From Dimorphilus gyrociliatus (taxonomy: Eukaryota; Animalia; Annelida): a stretch of 64,000 nucleotides of DNA. Every line of letters begins with the position of its first letter. Within the stretch, counting starts at the first letter, position 1. Below the pieces are notes generated by a model. It had not been told where the DNA came from. It saw only the letters and a program-made list of their open reading frames with translations, and ran no database searches. Below, one piece after another: positions 26,056-50,626 of the stretch. Where the stretch lies: NCBI GenBank assembly GCA_904063045.1, contig CAJFCJ010000012.1, positions 310,001-374,000 of the forward strand, given 5' to 3'. A program made the translations under genes and the position numbers.

Positions 26056-29000
26056 ATGAATCAATTGATTGGAGTAATAAAAAAATTTTCACCGGTTGTT
26101 TCTTTAAACGAGGAAAAATTTGAAGAATTTTCAGGATTACTAAAAGAAAATGACATCACAACAAAATGGTCCTTAAAAGAGATAGAAGAATATGTTAATA
26201 CATTAAAAATTGAATTTTGCAATGATAAATGTCCCGCAATTAACACAGTCGGTGAAAGGGCGATAAAAGAGAGTTTTGAAATTTTTTCGAATCAAGTATA
26301 CAGGTTTGTAAAAGAAGTTTACTCTTAAGCCATAGTAAATTTATATTTCTTAAATAGCTACTATGCTCTTAAAAGTGGAGAAGATGAAGAATGTTTCTTT
26401 GTTTATGAAAAATTTTTTGATTTGATGTTCACTGCAATGGAAGGAAATTATATATCATCAGGGAATGAGTCCTGCTTTGACAAAATATTTTACCAAGTTC
26501 CCGGAGTTATACGTTTTACTAAAGTCAGTAAAAGCGTTATTCCGTTAAGAATAATATTGAATATTCTATTATACAGTATATATACTGTATATATATATAT
26601 ATATATATATATGATTTTAATAGAATATGAACGAAAATCACGTAAAGAGATTCATTAAAAGTTTAACTAGAAAATTTGAGCCACGACCTCAAGAAACTGA
26701 TGAGAGCAAATGGAAAAAAACAATAAAACGTTGGCCTAGTGAAATTATTTATCATCTTAAGTAAGTCACTTGAAAATTAGATTGAATGATGGCTGAATCT
26801 AAATTTGTATTGTAAACTTTTCTATTCAAGAAAAGAAGGCCTTCTTCAGTCAAGGAAAGAAATAATTATATATATCAATTTCTGGCTTGAATTAAGTCAG
26901 CAGTATAAAGGTTCTTCGAGTGATAATCTTATGATTTATGTGTGTCATGAAATGCTTTCGTTTGCTGCATCAATGGTTAGAGATATGGGAGGTTCTACTT
27001 TATTTGAGGTAAAAACTATTCAAAATTATTCACTTACCATTTATATAATATAAATTATAATTTCATTGAAGGAAGGTTCCACCGACGATGTTGAAAATTT
27101 GCTGCGTACTTACCATACAATTTTCTTCATGGAGGATTTTCCTCGAAATGAATGTGCAGTTGACGCTTGGAGAGACATTATTGTCGAAAGTCTTCAAGTA
27201 GCTATAAAGTGAGTATCAAGCACATAAAATTTGTTCCAGATTTTATTAGTGCCTCTTTTTTTCTGATAGAGATAATAACAAACTGACAGCTATTACTTAT
27301 GATTTTACTTCAAAGGTGTTGTTTTTTGGTAATGATCACGAAACACCCAGATCACTTTCAGATTTAGCAAAAGCCTTGTGTAAAAAGTATATGGAAATAG
27401 ACGTGAGTTAAAAAATAGACATTCAAAGAGTTCATTAAAAAAGTTTTCTTAACATTTTAGTTTGAATCTGTAGGAATGAAGAGCCATTTGGATATCTTCA
27501 TTGAAGAAGTAAAAATGATGAAAGAAGATGAACATGTCTATAGACAATTTGAACATAAAGAGGAAATATTTTTAAATCATTTGGTTCCAAAGTTTCAGTC
27601 AGTATTGCCCTTATACATCAAACGCGTAAAGAAATGTAATGGGTGTACACTTTCAGGGATAATGTAGATAAATTAAAAGAGTTACTTGTCGTAATCATAA
27701 AGAATCCATTGTGGAGAATTGCTTGTGAATACTTTGAAGGTGCAAATGACAAAAAAAAATTAGTGAATTTAAAGAAGAATCCTGAAATCTTCAATTTAAT
27801 GTTCAGTACCATGGACAATCCAGATATACCTTATAATACCGATACACTAGATGCTTTTAAACGTATAGGATATACATTATATGACATAATGGAGTAAGTT
27901 ATTGTAAGAACTTTGTTTACATATAAAACACGAATAAAACTTGAACAGAAAACAAAAAGTTTTCAAGAAAATGACCAGTCTAGTTTACGATGTCATTGAA
28001 AGTGCGTTCAAATATACTAAACATCCTATTCATAGTGCGATATGGCGGTTTTCTATAGCAGTTGATTGGAAGGTAAGAAATGATTATAATATTAAAACTA
28101 CCATTAGTAATTTCTATATTCTGTGTTGGATATAAAAAGGATGAATTACCAAGGTTTAATAATATACTTGTGAGAATTAAATCGATATTGGAAAAGGATC
28201 AAAACATAGTAAAGAAATTCGACATTCTTGTTGAAGTAGTGGATTTTTTCTTTCAAAAATTTAGCTATGTCTATACGTAAGATGGATAAGATGTTCTTTC
28301 GCAATTCTTTACCTGATTTAATTGTCTTTTGCAGAAATGATAAAAGAGTATTGGAATTAAAAGATAACATGGCAGATCTTTACAACTACTGTTACACTTT
28401 ACCATGGACGATAGATGAGGACGATGAAAGACTTCGAGATTCAGACATTTCAGATGAAGAATCTCTAACACTAGCCGGCTACTTTCTTTTCGTCGCTACA
28501 AAATATTTTTATATTCCAGTAAGAGCAATTACATAAAACTCAATATGTTTTAAGTTTGCATTAAACAGAATAACAACATTACCGAGCTAGTAATACCTAT
28601 TGTTCAAACTGCCAAAAATCTACGGAAACAGGAAGATAATGATCTGTTACAGGTGATCAGAATAACTTCTTCAATTATAATATTTACTGTAAAAATATTT
28701 CTTTTATCAGGGACAAGCCGATAAACTATTAAAAGAATTAACAGACACGGCAGACATTCTTGGTGATGATACAGGAAAAGAAATAATCGATGAATTCCTC
28801 CAAACAGAAGATAATACTTTATTAAGTAAAGTTTAATCCATCGAAAATTTATATAGGAAGTTAACAGTATATTTCTTTTTAATAATAGCAAAAGTAATTC
28901 TTATGTATCCCCAATTTACCGATTACATCCATGAAAAACTACCAACAATTTTGGAAATTTCAAAAAGAGGAAATTTAGGGATTGAGATGAATTTTTTAAG

Positions 29001-31221
29001 TTTGCTCAATCAGGTTGCCTCAAAAAATCCTCAAGTATTTAATCAGGATACTTTTGACTATCTCATTGATCAACTGGAGGGGACAAAAGTGACTCAATGC
29101 TATTTAATCTTTCAATCCCTGACTACAAAACAGAATCAGCTGTTCCAAAAGCACGACAAACGATTTGCAGAATTAGTGCAAAATGACAGTTCAGGTTTGT
29201 CATACTGCAATATTTTACCTGAAATAGCAAATTCTCTGGAAAAAGCACAGTACTTTACAAAAGTTCTCTGGGAAAAACTTCAAAGCGAAAGTGGAATTAA
29301 CCGTGCAACGGTAATATATGCCTTACGAAACATGGCTCTTAGGTTCAAAGAACCTGTATTAGTTTATAAAAGCCATCTCACAAAAATGAAAGACGACGTT
29401 CAAATAAAAGACTCGGTAACTGCACTTCTTGATACTTTGGAAGGAAGGTCATTAGAAACTGTCGCAATAGACGTGGAGGAACAGAGAGAAGATATTGATA
29501 ATTTAGATTCCAGAGTTACGAATAATGAAGATAAAATTGAAAATCTTGATAATGATGTCAGAGAAACTAAAGAAGACGTCGCCAATGTTAAACAAGATGT
29601 CAAAGAAACTAAGGAACGCATTGATCAAATTGAATATACAATCAAAGGACTCGATGAAAGAGTTGAAGAACTCAGTCATATGACTCTTTCACATGCTCCC
29701 GCTTGGACTCGTCATGTTTCCGAATTAATGAATGATCAAACCGATCACGATTGGAGACTCTTAGCTATGAAACTCAATTATACAAACGACGATATACGAA
29801 ATTGGGCTACTCAACCAGATCCTTGTCTATCGATGTTTGATGAATGGTTTGCTACTCACAAAACAAGAGAAGCTACAAACGCCATTTTAACTAATCTGAA
29901 AGAAATGAACAGATTAGACGCTGCTGAAATTGTGGAAAGTGCACTTGCAAATGTGAAAGATGTTGTTCAAGATGACGAAGATGAAGAGTTTGAGAAACCA
30001 GAAGTGTTTCTCAGCTATCAATGGGGACATCAACAAGAAGTGAAACTTCTGCGTAAACACTTGGAGATGGCCGGATTCAAGGCATGGATGGACATTGGCC
30101 AAATGGGTGGAGGTGACAAATTATACGCCAAAATCGATGATGGTGTTCGTTCAGCCAAAGTGATTATCAGTTGTGTAAGTGAGAAATATGCAAAATCCGC
30201 AAATTGCTGTAGAGAAGTTAACTTGTCAACAAATCTTGGAAAACCAATGATACCAATACTCATGGAACAATTATCGTGGCCTCCTGCAGGTCCGATGGGA
30301 CCAATCATGTCTGAATATTTGTATATTAGGTTCTTCAAGTCTGGTGGAATGGAAAAAGGCGACTCTGTATTTTGGTTGCCAGCAAAATTTCAAGAACTTC
30401 TCATGCAAGTTCGATACTTCGTCGTACCAGATATGAAACTCATTACGAATGATTCTCCTTATAAAGGATGGATGAATCCACCGGAAGAAGAAATCATCAT
30501 TCCGAAACGAGAACAAAAGGCCATTGAATCAAGCAATGGGAAATCGGAAGAGAACACGGAACAAGAAGTTTCGCCAGATGTCTTTATATCTTATCAATGG
30601 GGAAAACAACCACAAATTAAACGTCTATATAAAAAGCTTAGTGAAATGGGCTATTACTGTTGGTTAGATATCATGCAGATGGGAGGAGGAGATTCTCTTT
30701 TTGATAAAATTGATAAGGGAATCAGAGGAGCAAAAGTGATAATATCATGTGTTACTCCAAAGTATGCATTGAGTGCGAATTGTCGAAGAGAAGTTTCATT
30801 ATCAGGAGCATTGAGTAAGCCAATTGTTCCTTTATTATTAGAAGACATGAAATGGCCACCAGAAGGACCAATGTCGATGACATTTACGGAGCTTTTATAC
30901 ATTGGATTTCACAGAAAGAAAGACGATAAGTTGTGGGAGGGTGATGAATTTAATCAATTAATTTCAAAAATTGACCTGAATGCATCAGGATGTCGAATGA
31001 TTTCGGAGGCAGCGGAGACTAATGAAAGTAGTAAAAAAGCTGAAGATAATGAAGAGGCCGCTCGTAAAAGAAAATTGGAAGAGGAAAATAAGCAAAAAGA
31101 GTTGGAGAAGGAAAATGCGAAAAGAATTGAAGAAGAAAGAAGAAAGGAGGCTGAAGAAATGAAAGAAAAAAATACTGATCAGTCACCAAAAAAGAAGTCA
31201 TCGTTATGTGTTTTATTGTAG
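26056..31221 (+). CDS. Array copy 1: helical N-terminal region - coiled coil - Death - TIR - TIR - charged tail - CaaX (CVLL); 14 exons, 1449 aa
   Basis: Exons traced with consistent phases: 26056-26303, 26358-26523, 26624-26760, 26831-27008, 27072-27208, 27270-27402, 27461-27597, 27657-27893, 27949-28072, 28140-28276, 28335-28518, 28569-28652, 28711-28825, 28889-31221 (total 4350 nt). Death domain ~29701-29946 (DWRLLAMKLNY...W...AT...L..MNRLDAA). TIR1 from 30004 (VFLSYQW...SANCCRE), TIR2 from 30580 (VFISYQW...SANCRRE). Confidence 0.88.
26589..26612. repeat. (AT)n microsatellite in intron 2 of array copy 1
   Basis: Read directly from the sequence. Confidence 0.9.
29485..30993 (+). repeat. 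1,509-bp near-identical coding repeat, copy 1 of 4 (coiled coil-Death-TIR-TIR)
   Basis: Constant offsets of +7769, +13611 and +19465 to the other copies. Sense and antisense translations are essentially identical; only about 6 variable sites were seen by eye. Confidence 0.97.
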
Positions 31222-31545
31222 TTAGAAAACTTTTATGAAAAGAATTTTAATTTTCATAGTGCGATTTTCGTTAATGTTTTATAATTAATAGAAAAGAGAA
31301 ATATGCGATTATTAAATTTAATTAATCAAATATAGAAATATGATTTTATGAATATTTGAAATATTTGTGCGAGAAACGCTGGAAATGAAGTAATTGAGGT
31401 TGAAAATGATTTTGATTTGAAAACTACCATTGATGAATAAATGGTTTGTTGGTCACAATAGTAGCGAGTGGGCATGATCACTAATGATCGTCCTTGACCA
31501 GTATAGCTGGAAGAAAGATATCTTCATTTTGTAGATGAGATAGTT

Positions 31546-31904
31546 TTTTAATGAAAATGTAGATAAGATATTTCATAGATATGTACTGATATCGATTATG
31601 TTACTGTTTGTTTAAATAATTATATACAGTATATACTATCTTTGTTTTTTAACTTCCTGGTGAACATTTTGAATTAATATGAAAAAGGAATTTTTATTTT
31701 TTAATCTTCTGCTAATTTTTTTGAGATAAATGTTTAATGAAAATGTAGATAAGATATTTCATAGATATGTACTGATATTGACTATGTTACTTTTTGTTTA
31801 CATAGTTATATACAGTATATACTATCTTTACTTTTTAACTTCCTGGTGAACATTTTGAATTAGTATGAAAAAGAATTTTTATTTTTGAGTGTTCTGCTAA
31901 TTTT
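31546..31904. repeat. Two-unit tandem direct repeat, period ~186 bp, in the copy 1-copy 2 spacer
   Basis: ATGAAAATGTAGATAAGATATTTCATAGATATGTACTGATA... starts at 31551 and 31737. Both units share AACTTCCTGGTGAACATTTTGAATT and TTCTGCTAATTTT, with scattered substitutions. Confidence 0.9.
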
Positions 31905-33645
31905 ATGAGTAGAGTGAATTCTGTACTTGAGTAATGTTTATAATTGATTGCAATATAAGCAAAAGTGTGAAATTGATTGAATTGTTTGTTCAATTATTAA
32001 GAAAACGCAGAAAATTCTAATTTTTATTATTTATACACTTCGTATTGTTAAATTTCTTAGTAATATTGAAAAAAGCTATCAATGTTTAAGAATTATATGA
32101 AATGTTTATTTTGCGGTTACGTATTGTGTGTAATTAATGAATGTACTTACAAATTTTATAATTAGTTTTTGCCCCAACATGTAACAGTTTTATAGAGGTA
32201 ACTGTTTTATTTATTGATACATAACAGAGAATTGTTCTAATTGATATGTATTCTTTTATTACTTTCGTTTAATATTTTCCACTCCTTTAGTTGACATAGT
32301 TTGAAAGGCATCTAAGTTTATGTAATTATTGTTGATAGCTAAACATAAATATAACTAATTTTGTTAAAGAAAATGATAAATATCTAAAAAAAAATGTTGA
32401 TAATTATTCTTCTAACTATAGTATAAAAATATATTGGACTATTTTATTCAATTGGTATCAAAGTTCCTACTGTGTGTTACTTTATACAATTTTCAATATA
32501 TTACTTTGGTTTAAAGCCTATCTGGAATTGAATTGGGATTTGTTTTACTTTTCTTTTTGCTTGAGGACTTCGAATGATTCAGAGTCATTAGAAACAAGCT
32601 TTGAAAAGAAAAACCGCCAGACTAGTGAATTTGTTTGGCTGACTTAGAGATTTTAAAAATTACAAGATAAGCTTAATTTTCTCAATAGGTTAGAGTTTTT
32701 GATAAGGTTTCTTTAAATTTGTTAATTGACTCTGTATTGATACAAATCTTACTGGTGAGTGTTTATGGAAAATATTGATTTGTGTTGATTTATTCCTCTA
32801 AGGACTACATGAAAAATTTATTGACGAAATCTAGTGTAGAATATAATATATTAGTCATTTGCAAGAGATTCAGTTATTGAATGCTAAAACCTTATTTTTA
32901 AGTTACCTTATTTTCCCACTATTTATTTGAATAGTGGCAGAAAGGCCTTTATGATCTGATTTCTGTACAATCCCTTTATTTGATGTTCAAATACTTTTCC
33001 TAAAATAGAGCAAACTATAAAAAGACATGTGGAAAATATTAAATACAAGTTAATAAGAGTGTTAAATTGAGTCCGTTGTCATTTATAATCAGGTAACCAG
33101 TTTAAGATTCAAAAAGATGGAGTTATAAAAAATTTATGTTATTTGTATTACAACTCTAAATATAAGATATAAACAATAAAATCAATTCTATAACATTTAT
33201 ACTGATATAAAATAGTAACCTACGTCTTAAACTATAAAATGAACAGTTTGATATTATCTCAAACAAATCTCCAAGTATATTTTGCGCAGCAATTGTTATT
33301 TCTGCTATGTAGGTTTAGGAAAAGTTTGTATAATTCTAAAAAAATGCTCTTGACTGCTTTAATTTAACATTTACATAGTTACATAGTTGTAATACCGATA
33401 CGTTAGTACTTAACATTGGTTAAGCATGTTTATAACGTATCAGGAATAAGAGTTTGTTCCTAACGCTCTTATACCATACTTATTTGTGTTCAAAGAAATG
33501 AAAACACTAAGCTGTTGATAGTTGTGAAAAAAGTGAATTTTAGCTTGGTGATAAAAAAAAATAATGTGATAAGACTCTTTTGCAATATTAATAACTCCAT
33601 GTAGATAAAACCAGTACTATTGATTCGTTTCGCACTTATTTATAA

Positions 33646-33692
33646 ATTGCTAGGTTACACTTGACGGTGTCAGTTCAGCAAATTTTTCCTTA
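33646..33692 (+). promoter_or_regulatory. Conserved upstream block of array copy 2 (X-box-like + TGACG + TCAGCA-AT-rich)
   Basis: ATTGCTAGGTTACACTTGACGGTGTCAGTTCAGCAAATTTTTCCTTA aligns with the block upstream of copy 3; ~100-145 bp before the ATG. Confidence 0.5.
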
Positions 33693-33790
33693 TTCTAGAA
33701 AATATTCTGTAGTTTATTATCAACTGCGTATTTTGGTAGAAGCCTTAGACAATAATAATTAATACCAGTCTACTCTTGTAGATTTTTGCT

Positions 33791-36700
33791 ATGGACAAGG
33801 GAATAAAATTAATAAAGAAATATTCTCCGCTTGCTCAAATAACAGAAGAAAAGCAAGCGAAATTTGAAGATGAACTCTATGACGTATCGACCGAAAATAA
33901 GCCAAGCATTAAAGATTTACTCTCTTATGGAAACGTTCTTAAACCGGAATTATTGAATGAAAAAGGTTCGAGTGGCAGCTCTCCTGGAGAGTCTGCAATC
34001 AATGAAGCATTTCGTCATTTATCAAATGTTATCTCTGAGTTAGTATACTTATGAACAAATTATTTTTCATTTTTCAACTAATGAAAAGTAAAAAAAATAG
34101 ATATTTTACATAAGAATAAATGATAAAAGGGGTGAATCTAACATTTTTTTTTCTTTCCGACTTTTTAGACATTATAGCAATGATGAATCGAATTTGGAAC
34201 ACTTGAAACCTCTTTATAAAGATTTAATGAATCTTATAACAACTGCTTATGAAGGAAACTATGTAACGTCTGGAAATTGTGACGCAATTAGAACCATACT
34301 TCAATTTGACTATTATAGTGACTATATTGAGGTTAGCAACAGTTTTTGTTTAAAGAAAACAAATAAGATAAACTGATTTTAACTTTTTAGAAAGAAGTAA
34401 CAGTAGATGATATTAGACGTTTGATGAGAGGAATTTGTCGTGACTTCAAACCTAGGGAAAATGACACAACCTTGACTACATGGAAAAACGATGTATACTA
34501 TCCTTTGGGTGAGATCATCGGCTGTGTAAAGTACGTAGAGATTATCTGACTAGCTATTCTACAAGAAAGTTTTATTGATATTAAAATTTCAGATTCGAAG
34601 TGCTTAGAAAGTGTAAAGCTGAAATAATTCACGGATTACTATTTTGGGCAGAGACAGGTATGAAGTATAAGGAAGATGACGACTCTGTTGAACATTTTAT
34701 ACAGTTTACGAATCTTATGAGTAGTGTTTTCGAAACTGCTTGCAATTCAATGCTTGATGATGAGAAGGGAGCACTTTTATTTATGGTAAATTTCATATGC
34801 ATTAATGATATATCAATAATCTTGTTCTAATGTACATAGGACATTGATGACAAAACATTCGATTCATTTTTATCAAGAGCAGACAAAATACTCTCAAATA
34901 AAGACTTTCCTCCAAATCGTTATCCCGAAGATAACATGCAACTTCTTGTACAAAATTGCCTTACAAGCTTTATCCAGTAAGATAAATACTTGAAAGATAG
35001 GTTACGATTGATAGTATATCTTATAATTTTTTTCCTTTTAGAGAAAGTAATGATTCAAAGATGTTAGGAAAAGTCTATGGTTTATACAATAAATTTGCTT
35101 CGTCAAGCAATGGAAAAGCTTTTGATATAGTAGAAGATATGAAGACGACGTTTCAAGAAAAGCTATCATTAATTGATGTAATCTATCATGTGTTTGAATT
35201 ACATATATTAACACAGTATAAATGTATATGCTGTATATATGTATAACAGTTTGAAGCTATTGGAATGAAAAGTGCCCTTGACCAATTCTTAGACGATTTA
35301 CGAGCAATAGAAAATGAAAATCAAGTCTCTCTTGTACGGGATAAGTACGAAAAGAGTTACGCGAAGGAGTATCTTCCGAAATTAAAGTTTGTCAATTTTA
35401 ATGAAGAATATGAGCTATTTTATCATTTGAGTTTTTAATTTTACACAGGAAAGATATTAACAAATTGAAGGAATTTATTCAAATTTTGATAGAAAATCCC
35501 TATTATGGCATATGCAGGGAATATTTTGACGACCATGTTACACAAAAGAAACTATTCACTTTTAAAGAAAATCCGGAAATACTTAATTTCATTTTTGATT
35601 TAATGTATAAATCAAAGTATGAATATAATGAAAGATTTAAGAGTGCTTATGATATAATAGGCCAAAGTTGTGTCCAGTTACTTGAGTAAGTGTATAAACG
35701 AATTCATTTGCAAAATTAAAACAAATATCTTTAACAGAAAGGAAAAATTATTGACAAAACGGAAAAAAGATCTATTAGATATTTTGGAACGATGCTTCGA
35801 AGTACCCAAACACCCTTATCATTCTGCTTGCAGCAATCTACTGTACCATGTCGAATGGAAAGTGAGCATTATAGAATAAAATTAATATAAAATATGTAAA
35901 AGAATTATAATTATAGGGAGAGATCGAGAGATATTCTAGAATTGTTAAAAAGCTGAGAGTTCATGTGGAAAAAGAGAATTCATATATAGAAAAGGATGAT
36001 GTTATAGTTCGTATAACTTCACAAGTAACTGAATATGTTAACTATCACAATGGGTATATATGAAAATTCAATCTGTTTTAAATTTAATTTAATGTTTTCT
36101 CAAAGAAAAAATAAAAAATTTATTGAATACGCTGACTCGTTTGCTGATCTTTTTAAATACTGCGTTAAGTTATCGTGGCTTTACGATTCTGATGATAAGA
36201 TTGTTAATGATAGAGATTTGGATGAGGATGAGAGGAGAACGCTCGCTGGAACAATTCTCATTAAACTTATGACCAATATCTACGAACCGGTAAAATAAAG
36301 AGTCTAGTTGATTGTATAATTAATAACACTAATATCAATAACTTAGAATAACGACTTCAATGATTTTGTACAACCAATTGTCGAAACGTTAAAGAAGCTG
36401 AAAAAACAAGACGACGATGAACAGATACAAGTAAGATAGTAACTACTGACTTAAGGTATTTGAAGAATTTCTCTTATATAAAGGAGTGTGCCAAGAACTT
36501 AGTAAGTGAACTAACTGATCAAATGGAACTTCTTGGTGATGAAGCAGGAGAAGATATAATTGAAGAGTTTTTGAATGATCGTGAGATATCTCAATTAGGT
36601 AGCCGTCTATTTTAAATATTTTACTGATATACTTTAAGGTTTCTATAAACAATTCAGATCGAATAGCCAGCATGTATCCATCCTGTCAAGTCAAGATACA

Positions 36701-39065
36701 CGAAAGCTTAGAAGAGATACTAGATATCGCAGAAGAAAATGGAGATGTAGGAATGATCACTTTACAAACCTTATTGAATAAAATTGCCGACAATGATCCC
36801 AAACAAATAACAAAAAAAGTATTTGACTATGTCATGAGCATATTAGACACAAACTTTGGAACTGCATATTTCTTTTTCTTACAAAAACTGGCTCCAAAAA
36901 GACCTCAGTTGTTTGATAATTACCACACCAGAATCAATGATCTCATTAGACAAGGCGAACACGGTAATGTCTTTTTACAACTACTGCCGGACTTGTCCCG
37001 AACAAAAGAACTAGCTCAAACAAATGCCAAGCTGACATGGGAGATATGTCAAAAAAATGATCCAACTTACGCGATAAGTGCTTATTATACACTACGATCC
37101 ATTGCCCTACGATTTAAAGAGACTGTTGAGGAGTATAAACCTCAATTGGAAAAACTAAAAGACGACCCAAAATTACGAGATAGCATAATGTCAATTCTTG
37201 ACGTATTGGAAGGAAGGACGTTAGAAACTGTAGCAAATGATGTTGAAGAACAAAGAGAAGATATTGATAATTTAGATTCCAGAGTTACGAATAATGAAGA
37301 TAAAATTGAAAATCTTGATAATGATGTCAGAGAAACTAAAGAAGACGTCGCCAATGTTAAACAAGATGTCAAAGAAACTAAGGAACGCATTGATCAAATT
37401 GAATATACAATCAAAGGACTCGATGAAAGAGTTGAAGAACTCAGTCATATGACTCTTTCACATGCTCCCGCTTGGACTCGTCATGTTTCCGAATTAATGA
37501 ATGATCAAACCGATCACGATTGGAGACTCTTAGCTATGAAACTCAATTATACAAACGACGATATACGAAATTGGGCTACTCAACCAGATCCTTGTCTATC
37601 GATGTTTGATGAATGGTTTGCTACTCACAAAACAAGAGAAGCTACAAACGCCATTTTAACTAATCTGAAAGAAATGAACAGATTAGACGCTGCTGAAATT
37701 GTGGAAAGTGCACTTGCAAATGTGAAAGATGTTGTTCAAGATGACGAAGATGAAGAGTTTGAGAAACCAGAAGTGTTTCTCAGCTATCAATGGGGACATC
37801 AACAAGAAGTGAAACTTCTGCGTAAACACTTGGAGATGGCCGGATTCAAGGCATGGATGGACATTGGCCAAATGGGTGGAGGTGACAAATTATACGCCAA
37901 AATCGATGATGGTGTTCGTTCAGCCAAAGTGATTATCAGTTGTGTAAGTGAGAAATATGCAAAATCCGCAAATTGCTGTAGAGAAGTTAACTTGTCAACA
38001 AATCTTGGAAAACCAATGATACCAATACTCATGGAACAATTATCGTGGCCTCCTGCAGGTCCGATGGGACCAATCATGTCTGAATATTTGTATATTAGGT
38101 TCTTCAAGTCTGGTGGAATGGAAAAAGGCGACTCTGTATTTTGGTTGCCAGCAAAATTTCAGGAACTTCTCATGCAAGTTCGATACTTCGTCGTACCAGA
38201 TATGAAACTCATTACGAATGATTCTCCTTATAAAGGATGGATGAATCCACCGGAAGAAGAAATCATCATTCCGAAACGAGAACAAAAGGCCATTGAATCA
38301 AGCAATGGGAAATCGGAAGAGAACACGGAACAAGAAGTTTCGCCAGATGTCTTTATATCTTATCAATGGGGAAAACAACCACAAATTAAACGTCTATATA
38401 AAAAGCTTAGTGAAATGGGCTATTACTGTTGGTTAGATATCATGCAGATGGGAGGAGGAGATTCTCTTTTTGATAAAATTGATAAGGGAATCAGAGGAGC
38501 AAAAGTGATAATATCATGTGTTACTCCAAAGTATGCATTGAGTGCGAATTGTCGAAGAGAAGTTTCATTATCAGGAGCATTGAGTAAGCCAATTGTTCCT
38601 TTATTATTAGAAGACATGAAATGGCCACCAGAAGGACCAATGTCGATGACATTTACGGAGCTTTTATACATTGGATTTCACAGAAAGAAAGACGATAAGT
38701 TGTGGGAGGGTGATGAATTTAATCAATTAATTTCAAAAATTGACCTGAATGCACCAGGATGTCGAATGATTTCGGAGGCAGCGGAAACGAAGGAAAGTAG
38801 TAAAACAGCAAAAGATGATGAAGAGGCCGCTCGTAAAAGAAAATTGGAAGAGGAAAATAAGCAAAAAGAGTTGGAGAAGGAAAATGCGAAAAGAATTGAA
38901 GAAGAAAGAAGGAAGGAGGCTGAAGAAAGGAAGAAACTGGCTGAAGAAAAACGGAAACAAGAGGAAGAATCAAAGAGAAAGCAAGAAGAAGATAGGAGTA
39001 AAAAAGATGAAAATAAGAGTGCTCAACCGCGAGCAAAGAAATCATCAATGTGTACCTTACTCTGA
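33791..39065 (+). CDS. Array copy 2: same architecture, ends CTLL
   Basis: ATG 33791. Same 13 intron positions and phases as copy 1, open frame across all junctions I traced. Terminal exon from ~36658 contains the identical core at 37254-38762. Confidence 0.88.
37254..38762 (+). repeat. 1,509-bp near-identical coding repeat, copy 2 of 4
   Basis: Offset +7769 from copy 1. Confidence 0.97.
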
Positions 39066-39464
39066 TAGAAATATTGAATTTATTAATACTGATTAATTTT
39101 GTAAAATTTTTGCTCATGATTGTACAATATGAAATAGAGATTTTTAATGATCAAATTTACCTAAGACACATAAAAGTTATCTGGTTTAACAGTACATATC
39201 TCTTATGCCGTATCTTTTTTTCTGATAATAATCCAAAGATTTCAGAGCCACCTTCGAATTATTATCTTTTTTATAATGATTGTTTTTGGCCATATGTTTT
39301 GGCCTTAATATTACAACTCATATAGGTGCCCTTCCATTGGACTACCGCTTTTTATGTCCTACTTTCGTAAGTAGTCTCGGTTAATAATCTAATATATTCT
39401 TATACCGATTTCTGTTTAGCAAATAATATATGAAGCCATTGATTATATCTTTGTTTCTCTATTC

Positions 39465-39515
39465 GTTGCCAAGTTACAATTGACGTTCGTCAACTCAGCA
39501 GAATATTTTTCCTTA
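39465..39515 (+). promoter_or_regulatory. Conserved upstream block of array copy 3
   Basis: GTTGCCAAGTTACAATTGACGTTCGTCAACTCAGCAGAATATTTTTCCTTA; ~75-125 bp before the ATG. Confidence 0.5.
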
Positions 39516-39588
39516 GACCACTAAAAAGTTCAATTTTTGGAAGTAAGCAGCCAAAGACAAATCGTTTTGGGTGAATAGCCGATAAAGT

Positions 39589-42500
39589 ATGGACAAGGCT
39601 ATAAAACTACTTAGGCAATATTCCCCGTTTGGTGAAATAGAGGAGGGTGCACTGTCAGACGTCAGAGAAATTTTTTCGTCAAGTGCTCCAAAAGAATGTA
39701 CTATTCCTGAGCTAATTATATTTACGAAGTATTTTCGAGAGGAATTATTAAAACAGCCATTACCTGTTTACAATTCAAATGGTGAATCGGCTTTCCGTGA
39801 ATTCGGCCAATATTTAAAATATAGGATCAACGAGTAAGCGTTATTAGAGAATATTTCATAATATTACTAATAATATATTAAACACTTTTATTAATCAGAA
39901 TTCTTTATTCTTGCAGAATGTGTTTTCTAATAACTGCACAACTAAATGTTTGAATCATTAACTATATTTACTTTTCTTTTCCAGTCAATATAATCGAGAC
40001 GACAAACTTCCAATAGTAAAACCATTGTATGATGAGTTTATTGAAACTATACTAAAGGTTTACGAAGAGGATTGCGTAACTTCAGGAAATTATAGTTCCC
40101 TTAGGGATCTAATATATGGGAGCAACTTTAAAACATATGCTAAGGTTAGAAAATATATAAATATTAGTTTATTCTTCATTTGAACAAGAGTTATAAATTC
40201 TTTTATAGGAGAACTTTACAGAAACTCACATGAAAAGGCTTATTCAAGCATTCAAAAGAGAATTTGAGCCAAAAAAAGAGACTAATGTTCGATCATGGAC
40301 ATCAAATATGCCTTATCCAGCTGGTGAAATATTGGATATGATAAAGTAAAAATAAATATTTATTGAAATATCTAAAGAATACATTTAATATTATTTATAT
40401 TTAGTCCTAAAGTCTGCGAATCAAATAAAAAGGAAATGATTGAGTTACTGCTATTTTGGTGTGAAAATTCAATGAAGTATAAAGGTGACGATGACGGCAC
40501 CAGGAATAAAATAGCTTTGGTCAGCAAAATTCTTTCGGTGTTTGAGTCACCATTGAAAGTCTCAAGGAAAGAAAACAATAATAGATGTATGCTTTTTATG
40601 GTTTGTTATAAATTACTATCAATTTTATATAGTTCTAAAGAAAAGTTATTCAGGATTTAGATATGAAAATTTATGACTATGCGTTTGGAAAGTTTCGTGA
40701 AATTATGATGTCAGAAGATTATGGGGCTAACAGATATGTCAATGATATTATTTCATTCTTAGTGAAGGAGTCGTTAGCGATTGAACTAGAGTAAGCAAAT
40801 AACTGTTTTAATTGATAAAAGATTTAAAAAATATAACATATTAATAGACATACTACCAACAATGAACTCTTAGCAAAAGCCTTTGCATTTTGCATGGATA
40901 TAAGAAAAAATGCAAAAAAAGATTCCAAATATCTTTCAAAGAAAATGATTGAAAAGATGAATGAAAGATATCTTACTATTGATGTAAGTTGAAATATAAT
41001 TCATTTAATAATGTTAATTATTTCCTTTAATTTTCTCAAAAATTAATAGTTTAAGGCAGTTGGTATGAAGGATCATTTTGATCAATTTTTAGACGAATTA
41101 GCCAGTATACGTACAAGAGAAGAATGCTCTAGTCTAGTTGAATTAAGGAAAAAGCATTTTGAAGAAAAGTTTTTTTCCATCATTCAGTAAGATAATATAA
41201 ATTAGTAATATAAATGATAAGAATTCATATTTAATTTGGATTTTCAGAAATGATATTGAACAGTTGAAACGTTTTTTAAAAGTAATTCTTGAAAATCCAT
41301 GGAGAGAAGTACTAAATACGTTTTATGTGGAAAAATTAGAAAAAAAGAAGCTTATAAACTTTAAAAAGAATGCCGAAATATTTTCATATATTTTTGATGT
41401 TGCTTATAATGCGAAATTAGATTATGACGAGAGAATATTGGATTGCTATTGGAAAATTGGTTTATCACTTTACGAAGCATTAGAGTTTGTTTTAAAACAC
41501 ATTTAATAGCCATGGTATTAAGATTTTTTCTCTTTACATAAACTTCTTAGCAAGCAAAACTGTATTGCAAAATTCAAGAAAGATATTGTAAAAGTTATCG
41601 ATAAAGCTTTCGATTTCTCTAAGCATCACCTACACAGTGCTGTATTCAGAATGACCTATGGAATTGAATGGAAGGTATAACCAGTGACACATTTTACGGC
41701 AATGTATATTATTACATTCAGTGTACTAATAATTCGTTAAATTTTTAACAAGAATGAATTAGCGACATTTCATAGTATTCTTCGTAAACTGAACGTTATT
41801 ATAGCGAGAAAAGAAGACCTAAGTCATCCATCAGATAGAATATGCGAAACTGCAAAATTAGTTATAGAAAGAATCTCATATGGAGTCGGGTATGAAAGCC
41901 GATGTCATAATTTTTTTTAATATTTACAAGCTATTGAACTTGAACAGCAAAAATAAGAAAATACTTGAGATAAAGGATACTTTGGGTGAACTTTTTAACG
42001 CTTGTTACGACCTACCATGGTCCATTGATGATGACGATCCTAGAATCGCAAAAAAATTGATTGTTAATGATGATGATAAGCGAACTCTGGCAGGACACAT
42101 TCTGAAGACTTCGTTAAAAACGATCTATCAGACAGTACTTATTCAATAAAGACAGACGAAATATTAGATAACATATGAAATTTTTCAGAATAACGACTAT
42201 AGTGAACTTTTATTTCCGGTTATCGAAGTAATAAAGAAATTAAAAAGACAAGACGATGACCAAGAGTTACAGGTTTAATAGTTGATATTTTAGCTCGGCG
42301 ACACTGAATTGTCTTTTCAAAACAGAACGCAGCAACTGACTTGATAAAAAATTTAACAGATCAGATGGAACTATTAGGGGATGAAGGTGGTATAGAGATT
42401 ATAGATGAATTTCTTGAAGAAAGAAATGGTGCTCTTTTAGGTTACAAACTTAATTATTCTAAATAAAATTAATATAATAAGGAAGATGATCATTTATAGG

Positions 42501-45009
42501 AAAGGTTGCTGAAATGTATCCAAACTGCTCTGACTATATCCATGAGAAGATCCCTGAAATTTTGGAAATAACTCAGGAAGAAGAAAATCTGGCCATGCAC
42601 TATTTCGTTCAATTAATGGGAAAAGTCATTCAACATCATCCTGAACAAATCACGGAAGACATAGTTGATTTCTTAATGACATATTTAGACGGACATCTAG
42701 CGGCGTCAACTTTTCAAATCTTTCAAAAAATCGCAACGACAAACTCACGCCTCTTAGAAAAACACCACACAACGATTGGTGACTTCATTCAAAATCACGA
42801 ATACGGCGGTATGTTTTGTAATTTAACAGCTGATCTTTCAAATTCCGAGCAGACGGCCAGTTATTTTACTGACATTATATGGAAAAGACATATTGCGACT
42901 GGTGAAACACCTTATACACCATCTCTTCTATATTCTTTTCGTTCAATGGCTCACAAATACAAAGAACCAGTTGCCAAATACCGACAAGAATTTGAAAAAA
43001 TGAGAGAAGGAAAACATAAAGATGCTATTTTAGCAATATTTGATGTACTAGACGGAAGGACGTTAGAAAATGTAGCAAATGATGTTGAAGAACAAAGAGA
43101 AGATATTGATAATTTAGATTCCAGAGTTACGAATAATGAAGATAAAATTGAAAATCTTGATAATGATGTCAGAGAAACTAAAGAAGACGTCGCCAATGTT
43201 AAACAAGATGTCAAAGAAACTAAGGAACGCATTGATCAAATTGAATATACAATCAAAGGACTCGATGAAAGAGTTGAAGAACTCAGTCATATGACTCTTT
43301 CACATGCTCCCGCTTGGACTCGTCATGTTTCCGAATTAATGAATGATCAAACCGATCACGATTGGAGACTCTTAGCTATGAAACTCAACTATACAAACGA
43401 CGATATACGAAATTGGGCTACTCAACCAGATCCTTGTCTATCGATGTTTGATGAATGGTTTGCTACTCACAAAACAAGAGAAGCTACAAACGCCATTTTA
43501 ACTAATCTGAAAGAAATGAACAGATTAGACGCTGCTGAAATTGTGGAAAGTGCACTTGCAAATGTGAAAGATGTTGTTCAAGATGACGAAGATGAAGAGT
43601 TTGAGAAACCAGAAGTGTTTCTCAGCTATCAATGGGGACATCAACAAGAAGTGAAACTTCTGCGTAAACACTTGGAGATGGCCGGATTCAAGGCATGGAT
43701 GGACATTGGCCAAATGGGTGGAGGTGACAAATTATACGCCAAAATCGATGATGGTGTTCGTTCAGCCAAAGTGATTATCAGTTGTGTAAGTGAGAAATAT
43801 GCAAAATCCGCAAATTGCTGTAGAGAAGTTAACTTGTCAACAAATCTTGGAAAACCAATGATACCAATACTCATGGAACAATTATCGTGGCCTCCTGCAG
43901 GTCCGATGGGACCAATCATGTCTGAATATTTGTATATTAGGTTCTTCAAGTCTGGTGGAATGGAAAAAGGCGACTCTGTATTTTGGTTGCCAGCAAAATT
44001 TCAGGAACTTCTCATGCAAGTTCGATACTTCGTCGTACCAGATATGAAACTCATTACGAATGATTCTCCTTATAAAGGATGGATGAATCCACCGGAAGAA
44101 GAAATCATCATTCCGAAACGAGAACAAAAGGCCATTGAATCAAGCAATGGGAAATCGGAAGAGAACACGGAACAAGAAGTTTCGCCAGATGTCTTTATAT
44201 CTTATCAATGGGGAAAACAACCACAAATTAAACGTCTATATAAAAAGCTTAGTGAAATGGGCTATTACTGTTGGTTAGATATCATGCAGATGGGAGGAGG
44301 AGATTCTCTTTTTGATAAAATTGATAAGGGAATCAGAGGAGCAAAAGTGATAATATCATGTGTTACTCCAAAGTATGCATTGAGTGCGAATTGTCGAAGA
44401 GAAGTTTCATTATCAGGAGCATTGAGTAAGCCAATTGTTCCTTTATTATTAGAAGACATGAAATGGCCACCAGAAGGACCAATGTCGATGACATTTACGG
44501 AGCTTTTATACATTGGATTTCACAGAAAGAAAGACGATAAGTTGTGGGAGGGTGATGAATTTAATCAATTAATTTCAAAAATTGACCTGAATGCACCAGG
44601 ATGTCGAATGATTTCGGAGGCAGCGGAGACTAATGAAAGTAATAAAAAAGCTAAAGATGATGAAGAGGCGGCTCGTAAAAGAAAATTGGAAGAGGAAAAT
44701 AAGCAAAAAGAGTTGGAGAAGGAAAATGCGAAAAGAATTGAAGAAGAAAGAAGGAAGGAGGCTGAAGAAATGAAGAAACTGGCTGAAGAAAAACGGAAAC
44801 AAGAAGAGGAAATCAGAATGCGAGAAGAAGAAATTAGAAAGCGGGAAGAAGCAATAATGAAGCGAGAACTAGAATTGAAAAAGGTAGAAGAAGATAATAG
44901 GCGAAAAAATGAGGAGAAACAGAGGCGAGAAACAGAGTTGAGAAGGAGAAATGAAGAGGAAAATCGTGATAATCCTCCGAAAAAGTCATCTACCTGTTCA
45001 ATTTTATAA
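39589..45009 (+). CDS. Array copy 3: same architecture, longest charged tail, ends CSIL
   Basis: ATG 39589. Same exon structure with open frame. Core at 43096-44604. Confidence 0.88.
43096..44604 (+). repeat. 1,509-bp near-identical coding repeat, copy 3 of 4
   Basis: Offset +13611 from copy 1. Confidence 0.97.
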
Positions 45010-45541
45010 ATATTTAATAATTTTAAAAAAGTATATTTTTTAAAGTGCAAATGGTGCTGTATATATGGATAAAAGTTTATATTCTAGTAAATACTATTGT
45101 CGACATGAAATGAATTAAAGGTTTTTTTTGTGAAGTTATTGTTGTGGCTGAATGAAAATCTTGAAATACAAATTTTTTTGAGTTGTGTTACTTTAAATAA
45201 TATAATTTCTTTAGATACAAATTTTTCATAAAAACGAGTTATAAGCTTTGCTAAAACGATTGTTTTTTTGTTCAGTTACACATGTTTTGTATATTTTTTG
45301 ATATGAAGCATGATCGTTTTGCATATAGCACAGCTATCTTTATTACTTAATTGATTTATTATTACAGCGAATTGTTTATTTTCTACGAAAGTGCTTTAGG
45401 AATTGATTATTTCTATGTTATGCTTGTTGGCAAGGTGAAACTAACTAATAACAGCGCAGCTCAAATTTTCTATATAGATTGCTTAACCTCATATTTCATT
45501 TTGAAATTGAAAATTCGTAAACAAAACACCTTGATTTTCGA

Positions 45542-48500
45542 ATGATGGATGTTTTTATAAAAGAAGTTGATAAATTTTCTCCTTTTAGTGGAATAACTGA
45601 TGATAAACTCTCCAAGTTTCGTGAAATTTGTCGGAAAGATTGTCCCGAAACAGCTTCAGTGGACGATTGCTTAAAATTTATAAAATTTTTTCGGAAGGAG
45701 TTGATGAAGAAACCATTACCGATCAACAATGATTCGGCGTCATCGGCCTTTGAAGAATGCGGCGTAATTGTCCGGCGTTTAGGTTCCAAGTAGGTTCATT
45801 TAATCGTTAAAAGCGATTTGCTGAGAATAAAGTGATTTTAATTTTATGGTCATCCAGTATAAAAGATAATGAAATGGTAAATCAGTTATTTGATGAGTGT
45901 GTGGAAACTATCATTAAAGTCTATGAAGAAGATTGCGTAACATCTGATAATTACAGTTCGCTAAGGTCATTAATACATGTAAAAAAATTTACCGAATACG
46001 CCGAGGTTTATGTTTAATTGTGCTAATTCTGATCTTATAAATAATTAAAAATCTATACAACAGACGAATACAACAGATATTCAACTGAAAAGACTTATTA
46101 ATGCTTTTAAAAGAGAGTTTGATCCAAAAGGTGAGAATGATCTGAAACAATGGGCCGGAAATATGCCTTACCCAGCTGGTGAATTATTGGAGAGTTTCAG
46201 GTAAGATTGATAAAATTTATTGGTTTATACTTAGTGCATTATTAGCCATATTATATATTTTTAGTTCTAAGGCTGTTAAAGAAAGTAAAAAAGAATTTAT
46301 AGAAATATTCATATTTTGGGCTGAAACTGCATTAAAGTACAAAGAAAAAGATAGTGATCACGTATTTTATTTATATTTGATTGCTAAAGTGCGCTCAATT
46401 TTTGAACGTCCATTGGAGAAAATCTCTAAAAAGGAGAAAGCAGAGATTCTTTTCATCGTTTGTATAAAATTACTATAAAATTTATAAAAAATCAATAATT
46501 CACGCTATTTAGAATTTGGACACAGAAGTTTACGATTATGCCTTCTCCAAATGTCAGAAAATCATGTTTTCTCCCGATTTTCTTTCAAATAGATATCCTA
46601 AGGATGTTATTGAGCTTCTAATCACAACTTCTCTGACCTATGCAATAAAGTAAAGTAGTTCACTAGTAATTTTTTCGTCTTTAGAAAGAACTAAGTTTTT
46701 CTTTTACAGAAATAATCCTACGAATAAATTATTAGCAAAAGCTTATGACTTTTCTTATACAATGTATAAAAATGATGAGAGAGTCGTCAAACGCCTTGTT
46801 GATAGCTTATTTAAATACCTTAATGGAAACTTTCTAACAATTGATGTAGGTTTTATAGTATAACTTTTAGAGAATAGTGCGTCTTAATTCCTAATGTATA
46901 TTGCTTTCTAAAAATATTTAGTTTGTGGAGGTTGGTATGAAAAGCCACTATGATCAATTTTTGGATGAGATAGCTAACATTAGAACAGGACCAGAAGCTA
47001 ACCAAGTGGTTGATTTGAGAAAAAAGCATTTTCAAGAAAAGTATTTTTATCTTATTCAGTAAGATTCTTGAATGTCATTGTAATAGATGTTATAAAAAGT
47101 TTCATTCAATTTTTAGACAAGATAAAGAAAATTCAAAAAAATTTTTAAAAGTGTTACTTGAAAATCCATGGGATAAAATAATAAGAACATTTTTCGTTGA
47201 CGCTATGAATAAGAACTTAATAAATTTCCATCAAAATCCCGATATATTTTCATATACTTTTGATTTGGCTTATAAGACTAAAATCTACTATGATGAAAGA
47301 TCACGTAGTGGCTATTGGACAATTGGTTCAACAATCTGTGAAGTGTTACAGTTGCGTTGAATATTAACAAAACGCAGTCTATATTCTAATATATTTTCTA
47401 TTGTATTTAGAAACCAGGGACTCATCAGCAAACTAAAAAAAGATATTTTTCGAGCTATTGAAGCGACTTTTGATTTTTCTAAACATCAACTACATGATTT
47501 CATTGTTGGATTTATACAAACTTTAAAATGGAAGGTCCAAACATGATAATTCTCAATAGTTGAAAATTATGATGTATCTTTTTTATACAGGGCGAAATAT
47601 CAACATTCAAGAGTATTCTTGTTAAGCTTAAAATAATCATAGACAAAAAAGAAAATATATGCGATGCTGAAGATAAGATCTGTAGGGTTACAAAAGCAGT
47701 CTTTGAACAAGTCAATATTGATTTAGCGTATGTAGAATAGAATAAATGAATGTTTTTCTTTATTAATTCACCAAAATTTTATAGAAAAAATAGGAAACTT
47801 CTTCAGATAAAGGATGCTTTGGGTGAGCTCTTTAATGCTTGCTACAACAATTCCTGGTCTATTTCAAATGATGATTCGAGGATTGCAAAACAGATATGTA
47901 TCGGTGATGATGAAAAGAGAACACTAGCCGGACAAATCCTAAAAGTTACAATGAACTCTATTTATCAATATGTACTTTCAGTGTATTAAATAAGAAGAGA
48001 AATCTGATAATGTATAATTAAATTTTTTCAGAATTTTGAATTCACTGCTCTATTTGAGCCAACAATCGAAACACTGAGACTTTTAAGAAAGCGATATGAA
48101 GATAAAGAACTACAGGTTCAACAAAATTTTTCTTTTCATTACTCTAGCAATTACAGTCGTTTATTTAAAAATACAGAAAGCAGCATCAGAAACAATATTA
48201 GGTTTATCTGATAAAATAGAGTTGATAGGAATTGATACAGGACACGACATCATTGATCAATTCATTGAAGAGAGAAGTATTCGAATCTTTGGTACAAATA
48301 CTAAATATTATATAACGCTGCAAAATACTGTAAAAAAATAACTAATATATTTACAGGAAAAGTTACCGAATTGTATCCTAGTTGTGCAGATTATATTCAC
48401 AAACACCTAGAGGAAATTCAAGATATAGCTGAGGACGAAGGTCAAATAGGACTTAATAATTTTGTACAACTAGTAACCAAAATTGGACAACATAACCCAA

Positions 48501-50626
48501 AAGAAATAACGCAGAAAATGGTTGACTTTTTAATCGACTATGTCGACGGACCATTTGCTTTTACAGCAATTCAACAAATAATACTACATCGAGTAGAGAC
48601 CTTAGAAAATTATCATGATAACTTTGCCAATGCCATAAAGTTTTCCCAATATGGTGGACTTTATATACCAGATAATATTATATTAGCCCTATGTACTACT
48701 GAAGAGAGAGCAAAATTCTATAGTAAAGCTTTATGGGAAAAGCATCTCCAGAATCAGGACACACCATATACCAAAGGAATTCTATACGCCCTTCAGCAAA
48801 TTGCTCAAAAGTACAAAAATGCAGTTGTCACTTACCAAAAAGAAATACAGAATATGAAAGACGGGAAGTATCAAAGTGCAGCTGCTGATGTCATCAATGT
48901 TTTAGAAGGAAGAACTCTGGCGAATGTAGCAAATGATGTTGAAGAACAAAGAGAAGATATTGATAATTTAGATTCCAGAGTTACGAATAATGAAGATAAA
49001 ATTGAAAATCTTGATAATGATGTCAGAGAAACTAAAGAAGACGTCGCCAATGTTAAACAAGATGTCAAAGAAACTAAGGAACGCATTGATCAAATTGAAT
49101 ATACAATCAAAGGACTCGATGAAAGAGTTGAAGAACTCAGTCATATGACTCTTTCACATGCTCCCGCTTGGACTCGTCATGTTTCCGAATTAATGAATGA
49201 TCAAACCGATCACGATTGGAGACTCTTAGCTATGAAACTCAACTATACAAACGACGATATACGAAATTGGGCTACTCAACCAGATCCTTGTCTATCGATG
49301 TTTGATGAATGGTTTGCTACTCACAAAACAAGAGAAGCTACAAACGCCATTTTAACTAATCTGAAAGAAATGAACAGATTAGACGCTGCTGAAATTGTGG
49401 AAAGTGCACTTGCAAATGTGAAAGATGTTGTTCAAGATGACGAAGATGAAGAGTTTGAGAAACCAGAAGTGTTTCTCAGCTATCAATGGGGACATCAACA
49501 AGAAGTGAAACTTCTGCGTAAACACTTGGAGATGGCCGGATTCAAGGCATGGATGGACATTGGCCAAATGGGTGGAGGTGACAAATTATACGCCAAAATC
49601 GATGATGGTGTTCGTTCAGCCAAAGTGATTATCAGTTGTGTAAGTGAGAAATATGCAAAATCCGCAAATTGCTGTAGAGAAGTTAACTTGTCAACAAATC
49701 TTGGAAAACCAATGATACCAATACTCATGGAACAATTATCGTGGCCTCCTGCAGGTCCGATGGGACCAATCATGTCTGAATATTTGTATATTAGGTTCTT
49801 CAAGTCTGGTGGAATGGAAAAAGGCGACTCTGTATTTTGGTTGCCAGCAAAATTTCAAGAACTTCTCATGCAAGTTCGATACTTCGTCGTACCAGATATG
49901 AAACTCATTACGAATGATTCTCCTTATAAAGGATGGATGAATCCACCGGAAGAAGAAATCATCATTCCGAAACGAGAACAAAAGGCCATTGAATCAAGCA
50001 ATGGGAAATCGGAAGAGAACACGGAACAAGAAGTTTCGCCAGATGTCTTTATATCTTATCAATGGGGAAAACAACCACAAATTAAACGTCTATATAAAAA
50101 GCTTAGTGAAATGGGCTATTACTGTTGGTTAGATATCATGCAGATGGGAGGAGGAGATTCTCTTTTTGATAAAATTGATAAGGGAATCAGAGGAGCAAAA
50201 GTGATAATATCATGTGTTACTCCAAAGTATGCATTGAGTGCGAATTGTCGAAGAGAAGTTTCATTATCAGGAGCATTGAGTAAGCCAATTGTTCCTTTAT
50301 TATTAGAAGACATGAAATGGCCACCAGAAGGACCAATGTCGATGACATTTACGGAACTTTTATACATTGGATTTCACAGAAAGAAAGACGATAAGTTGTG
50401 GGAGGGTGACGAATTCAATCAATTAATTTCAAAAATTGACCTGAATGCACCAGGATGTAGAACACTGTCAACATCAAGCAGAGTAAAAGATCAGTCGACA
50501 ACTGTTTCGTTAAATAAGAAAAGTGTTCAGAAAAATTCCGAGAAAAGAGATGACACAAACAGTTTGTTTGAATACAAGTACCAAAATTCTAATAGCAATA
50601 CATCAGGGGCATGCCAGATTTTATAA
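45542..50626 (+). CDS. Array copy 4: same architecture, unrelated short tail, ends CQIL
   Basis: ATG 45542. Same exon structure with open frame. The track's start at 48371 (TTG) is internal to the last exon. Core at 48950-50458. Confidence 0.87.
48950..50458 (+). repeat. 1,509-bp near-identical coding repeat, copy 4 of 4
   Basis: Offset +19465 from copy 1. Diverges immediately after ...GCACCAGGATGT. Confidence 0.97.

Follow-up and report, generated by a model that had tools for sequence, protein, structure and literature searches.

How can four neighbouring genes be practically identical over 1.5 kb of coding sequence and yet, within the same exon, be so diverged that silent sites approach saturation? 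The question is raised by a tandem array in the annelid Dimorphilus gyrociliatus, contained in the 64,000-nucleotide stretch analysed here (the window; CAJFCJ010000012.1:310001-374000, assembly GCA_904063045.1). The array comprises four paralogs, A to D, arranged head to tail on the + strand and encoding proteins of 1421–1513 amino acids. Each protein has a helical N-terminal part of ∼870 residues; after it come a coiled coil, one Death and two TIR domains, a tail and a CaaX-type end.

26056..31221, +, gene A (DgyrCDS8667), 1449 amino acids; window open reading frame an exact match to the annotated protein; ends CVLL
33791..39065, +, gene B (DgyrCDS8668), 1480 amino acids; annotation and window open reading frame, with the architecture of A; ends CTLL
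39589..45009, +, gene C (DgyrCDS8670), 1513 amino acids, 14 exons; spliced complementary DNA (cDNA) contigs and an annotated protein of equal length; ends CSIL
45545..50626, +, gene D (DgyrCDS8671), 1421 amino acids, tail unrelated to the others; window open reading frame an exact match to the annotated protein; ends CQIL

A near-identical core within a diverged exon

The sequence-only reading of this stretch had described a block of gene A that recurs in the three other genes with about six variable sites. Self-BLAST and a four-way MAFFT alignment place the four copies of this core as follows.

29485..30993, +, core copy A, 503 codons (coiled coil, Death, TIR1, TIR2); self-BLAST and four-way alignment
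37254..38762, +, core copy B, offset +7769; self-BLAST and four-way alignment
43096..44604, +, core copy C, offset +13611; self-BLAST and four-way alignment
48950..50458, +, core copy D, offset +19465, the shortest tract; four-way alignment

The alignment contains exactly six variable columns in 1509 nucleotides. Five are synonymous and the sixth is a Ser/Pro change in A; the three differences private to D all lie in the last 100 nucleotides of its tract. In the coordinates of A, with letters in the order A/B/C/D, the sites are:

29778 TTCC, 30393 AGGA, 30891 GGGA, 30945 TTTC and 30951 TTTC, codon position 3
30985 TCCC, codon position 1, Ser/Pro

Silent sites are thus almost identical too, as had been claimed. 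Among pairs of A–D, the number of synonymous substitutions per synonymous site (dS; Nei-Gojobori) is 0.003–0.017 and its nonsynonymous counterpart (dN) 0–0.0008. Within this exon, the 186–193 codons just before the core give a dS from 1.7 to saturation, a dN of 0.47–0.68 and 30%–40% amino acid identity; the divergence reported earlier is therefore real, its figure of 25%–35% being slightly low. In windows of 50 codons, third-position identity jumps from 0.35–0.50 to 1.00 within ∼150 nucleotides. The longest perfect run is 614–1238 nucleotides, depending on the pair, against at most 115 nucleotides in 2000 column shuffles (P ≤ 5e-4 for every pair).

Farther upstream, similarity is detectable in exons only (25%–64% amino acid identity by tblastx). 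No alignment was found between copies for the introns and spacers of A–D, in agreement with the earlier statement that the introns do not align. On both sides of the tract, the flanking sequence is only 35%–60% identical in every pair that includes D. For pairs among A, B and C, identity breaks on the 3′ side at ∼31160–31183.

Staggered tract borders

The tract starts ∼590–600 nucleotides inside the last exon, where the coiled coil begins, and stops 11 residues past the second TIR domain as delimited by its Pfam TIR_2 envelope. The border positions given by the sequence-only reading, at the start of the coiled coil and just past TIR2, therefore hold. Its picture of one end on each side does not, as the edges are staggered.

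29423..29484, +, staggered 5′ edge; B, C and D identical from ∼29458–29460 (coordinates of A), A from 29485
30994..31183, +, older 3′ extension, common to A, B and C until ∼31160 and to B and C until ∼31183; D unrelated from 30994

At the 5′ edge, B and C are ∼89% alike already from 29423. The end points found on the 5′ side are 29443, 29458, 29460 and 29485; those on the 3′ side are 30984, 30993, 31159–31163 and 31183. The two parsimony-informative sites conflict, with 29778 dividing the copies AB|CD and 30393 AD|BC, a pattern that cannot arise from one shared history unless copies exchanged sequence. Staggered ends together with incompatible sites show that there was more than one exchange event. 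Identity is also graded, from 99.6%–99.9% in the core to ∼93%–98% in the A/B/C tail, where the extension to ∼31160 carries 11 variable sites in 170 nucleotides. The events are therefore likely to be of different ages.

A second array and comparison across the family

A second array lies on scaffold CAJFCJ010000005.1. It comprises DgyrCDS3205 (E), its tandem neighbour F and, ∼50 kb off, DgyrCDS3196 (G), which is adjoined by a NACHT-LRR (leucine-rich repeat) gene. The tandem pair E/F shares a tract of 1559 nucleotides with five mismatches and a core dS of 0.0135, compared with an N-terminal dS of 1.24. Between E/F and G, the core dS is 0.106 and the N-terminal dS 1.9–2.6, and the E/G tract has 58 differences. 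Expressed in the coordinates of A, the tracts extend over 29440–30992 (E/F) and 29506–30983 (E/G), compared with 29458/29485–30993 for the window genes. The second array repeats the homogenization of the same module, with ends at the same places.

Between the two arrays, the core is 80% identical in nucleotides, with a dN of 0.08, a dS of ∼1.9 and a dN/dS of ∼0.04. Core dS thus rises with distance, from 0.0135 for neighbours to 0.106 at ∼50 kb and ∼1.9 on another scaffold. Because silent sites in the same core reach a dS of ∼1.9 while dN is 0.08, neither purifying selection nor constraint at the nucleotide level is the cause of the silent identity within an array. The earlier argument that purifying selection alone would not suffice is borne out.

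Among paralog pairs from 14 other species, those with 25%–50% N-terminal identity have a core identity of 60%–86%, and core identity tracks N-terminal identity. The Dimorphilus pairs combine N-terminal identities of 27%–45% with core identities of 95.8%–100%. Among the species sampled so far, near-identical cores were found in Dimorphilus only.

Phylogenetic trees reflect the same division. In the core tree, A–D form one clade with zero branch lengths, whereas in N-terminal trees they are 1.5–1.8 substitutions per site apart, C and D being sisters with 100% support and B lying closest to the second array and to another species' homolog. By their tails, C groups with A and B, and D is unrelated.

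Independent reads and a sister lineage

Read evidence came from Logan contigs (k = 31) for one 5901-nucleotide stretch of gene C. In the genomic run X1, contigs specific to C, B and D enter the shared region by 30 nucleotides, as follows from a k = 31 graph, at depths of 220, 232 and 222, respectively. The core itself is a single path, in contigs of 160–982 nucleotides, and these genomic contigs carry two of the assembly's own variable core sites. The tail shared by A, B and C has 2.8 times the single-copy depth and that shared by B and C 1.8 times, which fit three and two copies.

Four further runs, X2, X3, X4 and X5, labelled "DNA?" or "?", are transcriptomes, since their contigs skip the GT..AG introns of gene C. 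Two of these cDNA libraries, X2 (2020) and X4 (2017), carry the same core; the organism name under which X4 is filed we take to be the older name of the species. RNA depth was not used for copy number owing to 3′ bias.

Run X6 is a coral-tank metatranscriptome that holds a sister lineage, in a few contigs of low depth. Its pieces of the N-terminal exons of C are 96%–98% identical to gene C. In the core, its pieces depart from each of the four window copies at ∼13 of 1098 nucleotides, nearly all of them third positions, and at these sites the window copies agree among themselves. The sequence-only reading had predicted that cores would cluster by species and N-termini by paralog. The X6 contigs, few and of low depth as they are, fit this prediction: on their sequences, the cores would group by lineage and the N-termini by paralog. 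In one X6 contig, a B-type N-terminus (29 of 30 nucleotides) is joined to A-type letters at 43070–43095. At least one tract end has therefore moved since the lineages split.

Excess depth over the core

The core contigs of run X1 lie at 6.7–8.2 times the single-copy depth, corresponding to ∼7 copies, whereas the assembly and its annotation contain four. The extra depth parts from the A/B/C tail at 44604/44605, which is the D-type 3′ edge; judged by depth sums at 43074–43095, it seems to carry the 5′ edge of the B/C/D type.

Several sources of this excess were considered and rejected. GC bias does not account for it: the first core contig has a GC content of 0.294, like the flanks, and still lies at 7.2 times the single-copy depth, and the tails, at a GC content of 0.37, give the expected 2.8-fold and 1.8-fold values. 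The genes of the second array are only 80% identical in DNA and account for local extra contigs only, such as a loose end before 43495 that encodes their variant. Extra copies of B, C or D are not the source either, as each N-terminal contig is at single-copy depth (222 for D). No other annotated protein of 425–2536 amino acids with an identical core was found.

The excess may thus be due to about three more core genes missing from the haplotype-merged assembly, or to gene A being multi-copy, or else a depth of 220 is half depth, with very different haplotypes in a heterozygous state. We regard it as possible, though rather doubtful, that the array is incomplete and perhaps structurally polymorphic, with about three further genes that have the same core and other N-termini and tails having been lost in merging. 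The core might then be a recombination hinge that both homogenizes the module and reshuffles heads and tails.

A separate set of contigs, both genomic and cDNA, shares the Lys/Glu-rich tail of C up to 44693, 44757 or 44822 and then runs into sequence that neither the window nor the compared proteins contain. These contigs could represent further paralogs, or unrelated genes that share low-complexity words.

Probable recurrent gene conversion and its alternatives

We consider it highly probable that the identity of the core is explained by recurrent interlocus gene conversion confined to a constrained module. The sequence-only reading had proposed recurrent conversion or module transfer, and this proposal is upheld by the patch-like identity, the staggered ends, the conflict between sites and the second array with its fall-off over distance. 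The comparison of dS on which it had been made to depend puts the core far below the N-terminal part (0.003–0.017 versus at least 1.7). Under this explanation, the four paralogs would be old, their 870 N-terminal residues, introns, spacers and, in part, tails having become saturated at silent sites. The 1.5-kb coiled-coil/Death/TIR/TIR module, by contrast, would have been overwritten repeatedly from copy to copy by non-reciprocal homologous recombination. Strong purifying selection (dN/dS ∼0.04) would slow divergence of the core and so keep it a substrate for recombination, whereas fast-diverging N-termini and tails of variable length would block extension of the heteroduplex. Selection would probably also remove conversions that erase the distinct N-termini. 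Such feedback between constraint and divergence could produce a sharp and stable border inside an exon, and the outcome would be a set of proteins with different N-termini, presumably for sensing or binding, on one common chassis for signalling and membrane anchoring.

Crossing over offers another route to a shared core. A single recent module replacement or crossover within it, or a few of them, by non-allelic homologous recombination, would generate chimeric genes, with the core as the hinge around which heads and tails are reshuffled. The sisterhood of the C and D N-termini accords with this, given that their tails are unrelated and that the C tail belongs with the A and B tails; the 1.5-kb direct repeats, spaced 5.8–7.8 kb apart, are good substrates, and read depth suggests a copy number that differs from the assembly. 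In every pair, however, the tract has diverged sequence to either side. A single crossover would not produce this arrangement, which argues for a patch rather than for a crossover or duplication of a whole unit. The staggered ends, the conflicting informative sites, the gradient of identity, indicating events of differing ages, and the graded series in the second array also speak against it, and we judge this explanation unlikely. More improbable in our estimation, at a level where we would be surprised to see it hold, is an artefact of assembly or polishing, in which copies that really differ were made alike by Quiver, Pilon or haplotype merging. The assembly was built from error-prone PacBio RS II reads (PBcR, Quiver), polished by Pilon with 101-nucleotide Illumina reads and processed with HaploMerger2; multi-mapping short reads can draw copies toward the majority sequence, and the depth of the core does not match the number of copies assembled. 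Yet the k-mer contigs of X1, which are independent of the assembly, also give a single core path of up to 982 nucleotides at ∼7-fold depth, two of the assembly's variable sites included, and two transcriptome libraries contain the same core. Polishing left six copy-specific differences in place here, and the same pipeline left five in the E/F tract and 58 in E/G; nor can it create borders against flanks that are ∼50% identical. The remaining candidate, very recent whole-gene duplicates with accelerated or targeted N-terminal mutation, or else a core held by selection at the nucleotide level, has almost no credit with us and is already contradicted. Specificity probably resides in the N-terminal region, where dN is high (0.47–0.68), but silent sites, introns and spacers are saturated as well, and the N-terminal exons of gene C in X6 differ by only ∼2%–3%, an ordinary rate. 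Selection on nucleotides is at odds with the same core standing at a dS of ∼1.9 between the arrays.

Some observations weigh against recurrent conversion, or against the detail in which we describe it. With ∼7 core copies by depth and four assembled, the set of donors and recipients is incompletely known. An approximately unbiased (AU) test on the 870-amino-acid N-terminus does not reject monophyly of A–D (p = 0.138), so the discordance between trees is one of branch lengths rather than of proven topology. A footprint of GC-biased conversion was looked for through the GC content of third codon positions, and no excess was seen in the core of either array (0.30 in the core and 0.25–0.32 in the N-terminal part); such a footprint is a frequent, not an obligatory, trace of conversion. 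The identity of the copies was read from the assembly and the Logan contigs. Because Pilon, working with 101-nucleotide reads, may have removed some real differences between copies, and because minor variants are lost from Logan contigs, the value of 0.1%–0.4% is a lower bound on divergence of the core. The contig of 982 nucleotides argues that true divergence is not above roughly 1%–2%, because several percent would have fragmented it, and the contrast between core and flanks is safe from artefact.

Protein architecture and neighbouring sequence

Pfam identifies one Death domain (E = 1.6e-11) followed by two TIR domains (TIR_2 twice, E = 3.7e-42). The N-terminal ∼870 residues match no Pfam family and yield only weak HEAT-repeat-like leads. 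The nearest solved chains to the TIR domains are those of the SARM1 TIR (E = 2e-4). In the alignment, which covers TIR1 only, the Glu of a C-R-E-V motif aligns with the glutamate of the SARM1 K-E-I motif and may therefore occupy the position of the catalytic Glu642.

The tails of A, B and C are rich in Lys and Glu, that of D being the exception. Despite these differing tails, all four proteins end in Cys-aliphatic-aliphatic-Leu (31186–31221, 39030–39065, 44974–45009 and 50591–50626), preceded by a stretch that is basic or rich in Ser. The same kind of ending is present in the three second-array proteins and in the other species' homolog, as CSIL, CLLL, CNIL and CILL.

Spliced cDNA contigs from runs X2 and X4 define 13 GT..AG introns of 53–151 nucleotides in gene C. 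Its joined exons form an open frame of 1513 amino acids, with the last exon starting at 42497. All four genes appear to be transcribed, since the cDNA runs contain contigs and loose ends specific to each of A, B, C and D.

Three other features of the window were recorded, the first two being ordinary neighbour genes.

3781..6440, +, exons of a xanthine dehydrogenase/aldehyde oxidase gene
13961..16208, −, doublecortin and protein-kinase gene; base composition strongly skewed (AT skew −0.39 at 14001–16000)
31536..31904, spacer 3′ of gene A with an AT-rich unit of 186 nucleotides in two tandem copies, 91% alike

Relation to known systems

The process is of the same kind as that already known from mammalian TLR1 and TLR6, and the array is a very clean new example of it, in another protein family and phylum. 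In TLR1/TLR6, a conversion tract of ∼920 nucleotides, which takes in the final LRRs, the transmembrane segment and the greater part of the TIR domain, has been homogenized independently in nine species, with 96% identical codons inside the tract and 56% outside; its ends are reproducible within ∼25 nucleotides in nine mammals, and pairs differ at 5–35 positions (Kruithof et al. 2007, PMC2077338). Both systems consist of tandem paralogs of the innate-immune type, in which a tract within an exon covers the signalling end, silent sites are identical, the ends are sharp and the N-terminus is divergent. The differences lie in number, size and setting. Instead of two genes, four take part here, with three more in the second array; at 1509 nucleotides and one to six differences per pair, the tract is longer and cleaner. 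Its module, of a coiled coil, a Death domain and two TIR domains, belongs to a protein predicted to be cytoplasmic and prenylated, in contrast to the LRR, transmembrane and TIR parts of TLR1/TLR6. Recurrence, seen there across nine species, is seen here between two arrays of one genome.

Theoretical work by Walsh in 1987 and by Teshima and Innan in 2004 is said to treat conversion that depends on sequence similarity, such that one gene pair can show two regimes: slowly evolving regions stay homogenized while diversifying or weakly constrained regions escape and diverge freely, with sharp borders between them. Where that theory is a model, the present locus is an unusually clear case from nature, whose border is the same in both arrays.

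In the protocadherin and UGT1A clusters, variable exons are spliced to a single common set of constant exons. The arrays described here likewise place many different N-terminal parts on one invariant signalling part; unlike those clusters, each gene has its own copy of the constant part, kept alike by recombination.

The order of coiled coil, Death, TIR and TIR is also that of a wider metazoan family. Mollusc, echinoderm, hemichordate and amphioxus Death-TIR-TIR homologs of 1100–1460 amino acids have the same Pfam set and a core identity of 50%–60%, and UniRef lists one member, from a sea urchin, as "MyD88-like protein L1". No functional test of any member of the family was found in the literature searched.

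Conversion and divergence thus stand side by side in one exon, where 503 codons with a dS below 0.02 abut saturated codons. This makes the locus useful for measuring how long conversion tracts are, where homology thresholds lie and what part selection plays in setting tract borders, and it also carries a practical warning, as such a locus is prone to mis-assembly and to errors in copy number. If the core does act as a hinge, a genome of 74 Mb would gain a combinatorial repertoire of receptors. For the family as a whole, the pattern marks coiled coil, Death, TIR and TIR as one functional module of an uncharacterized but widely conserved group of animal proteins, and the 870 N-terminal residues as the portion that can specialize.

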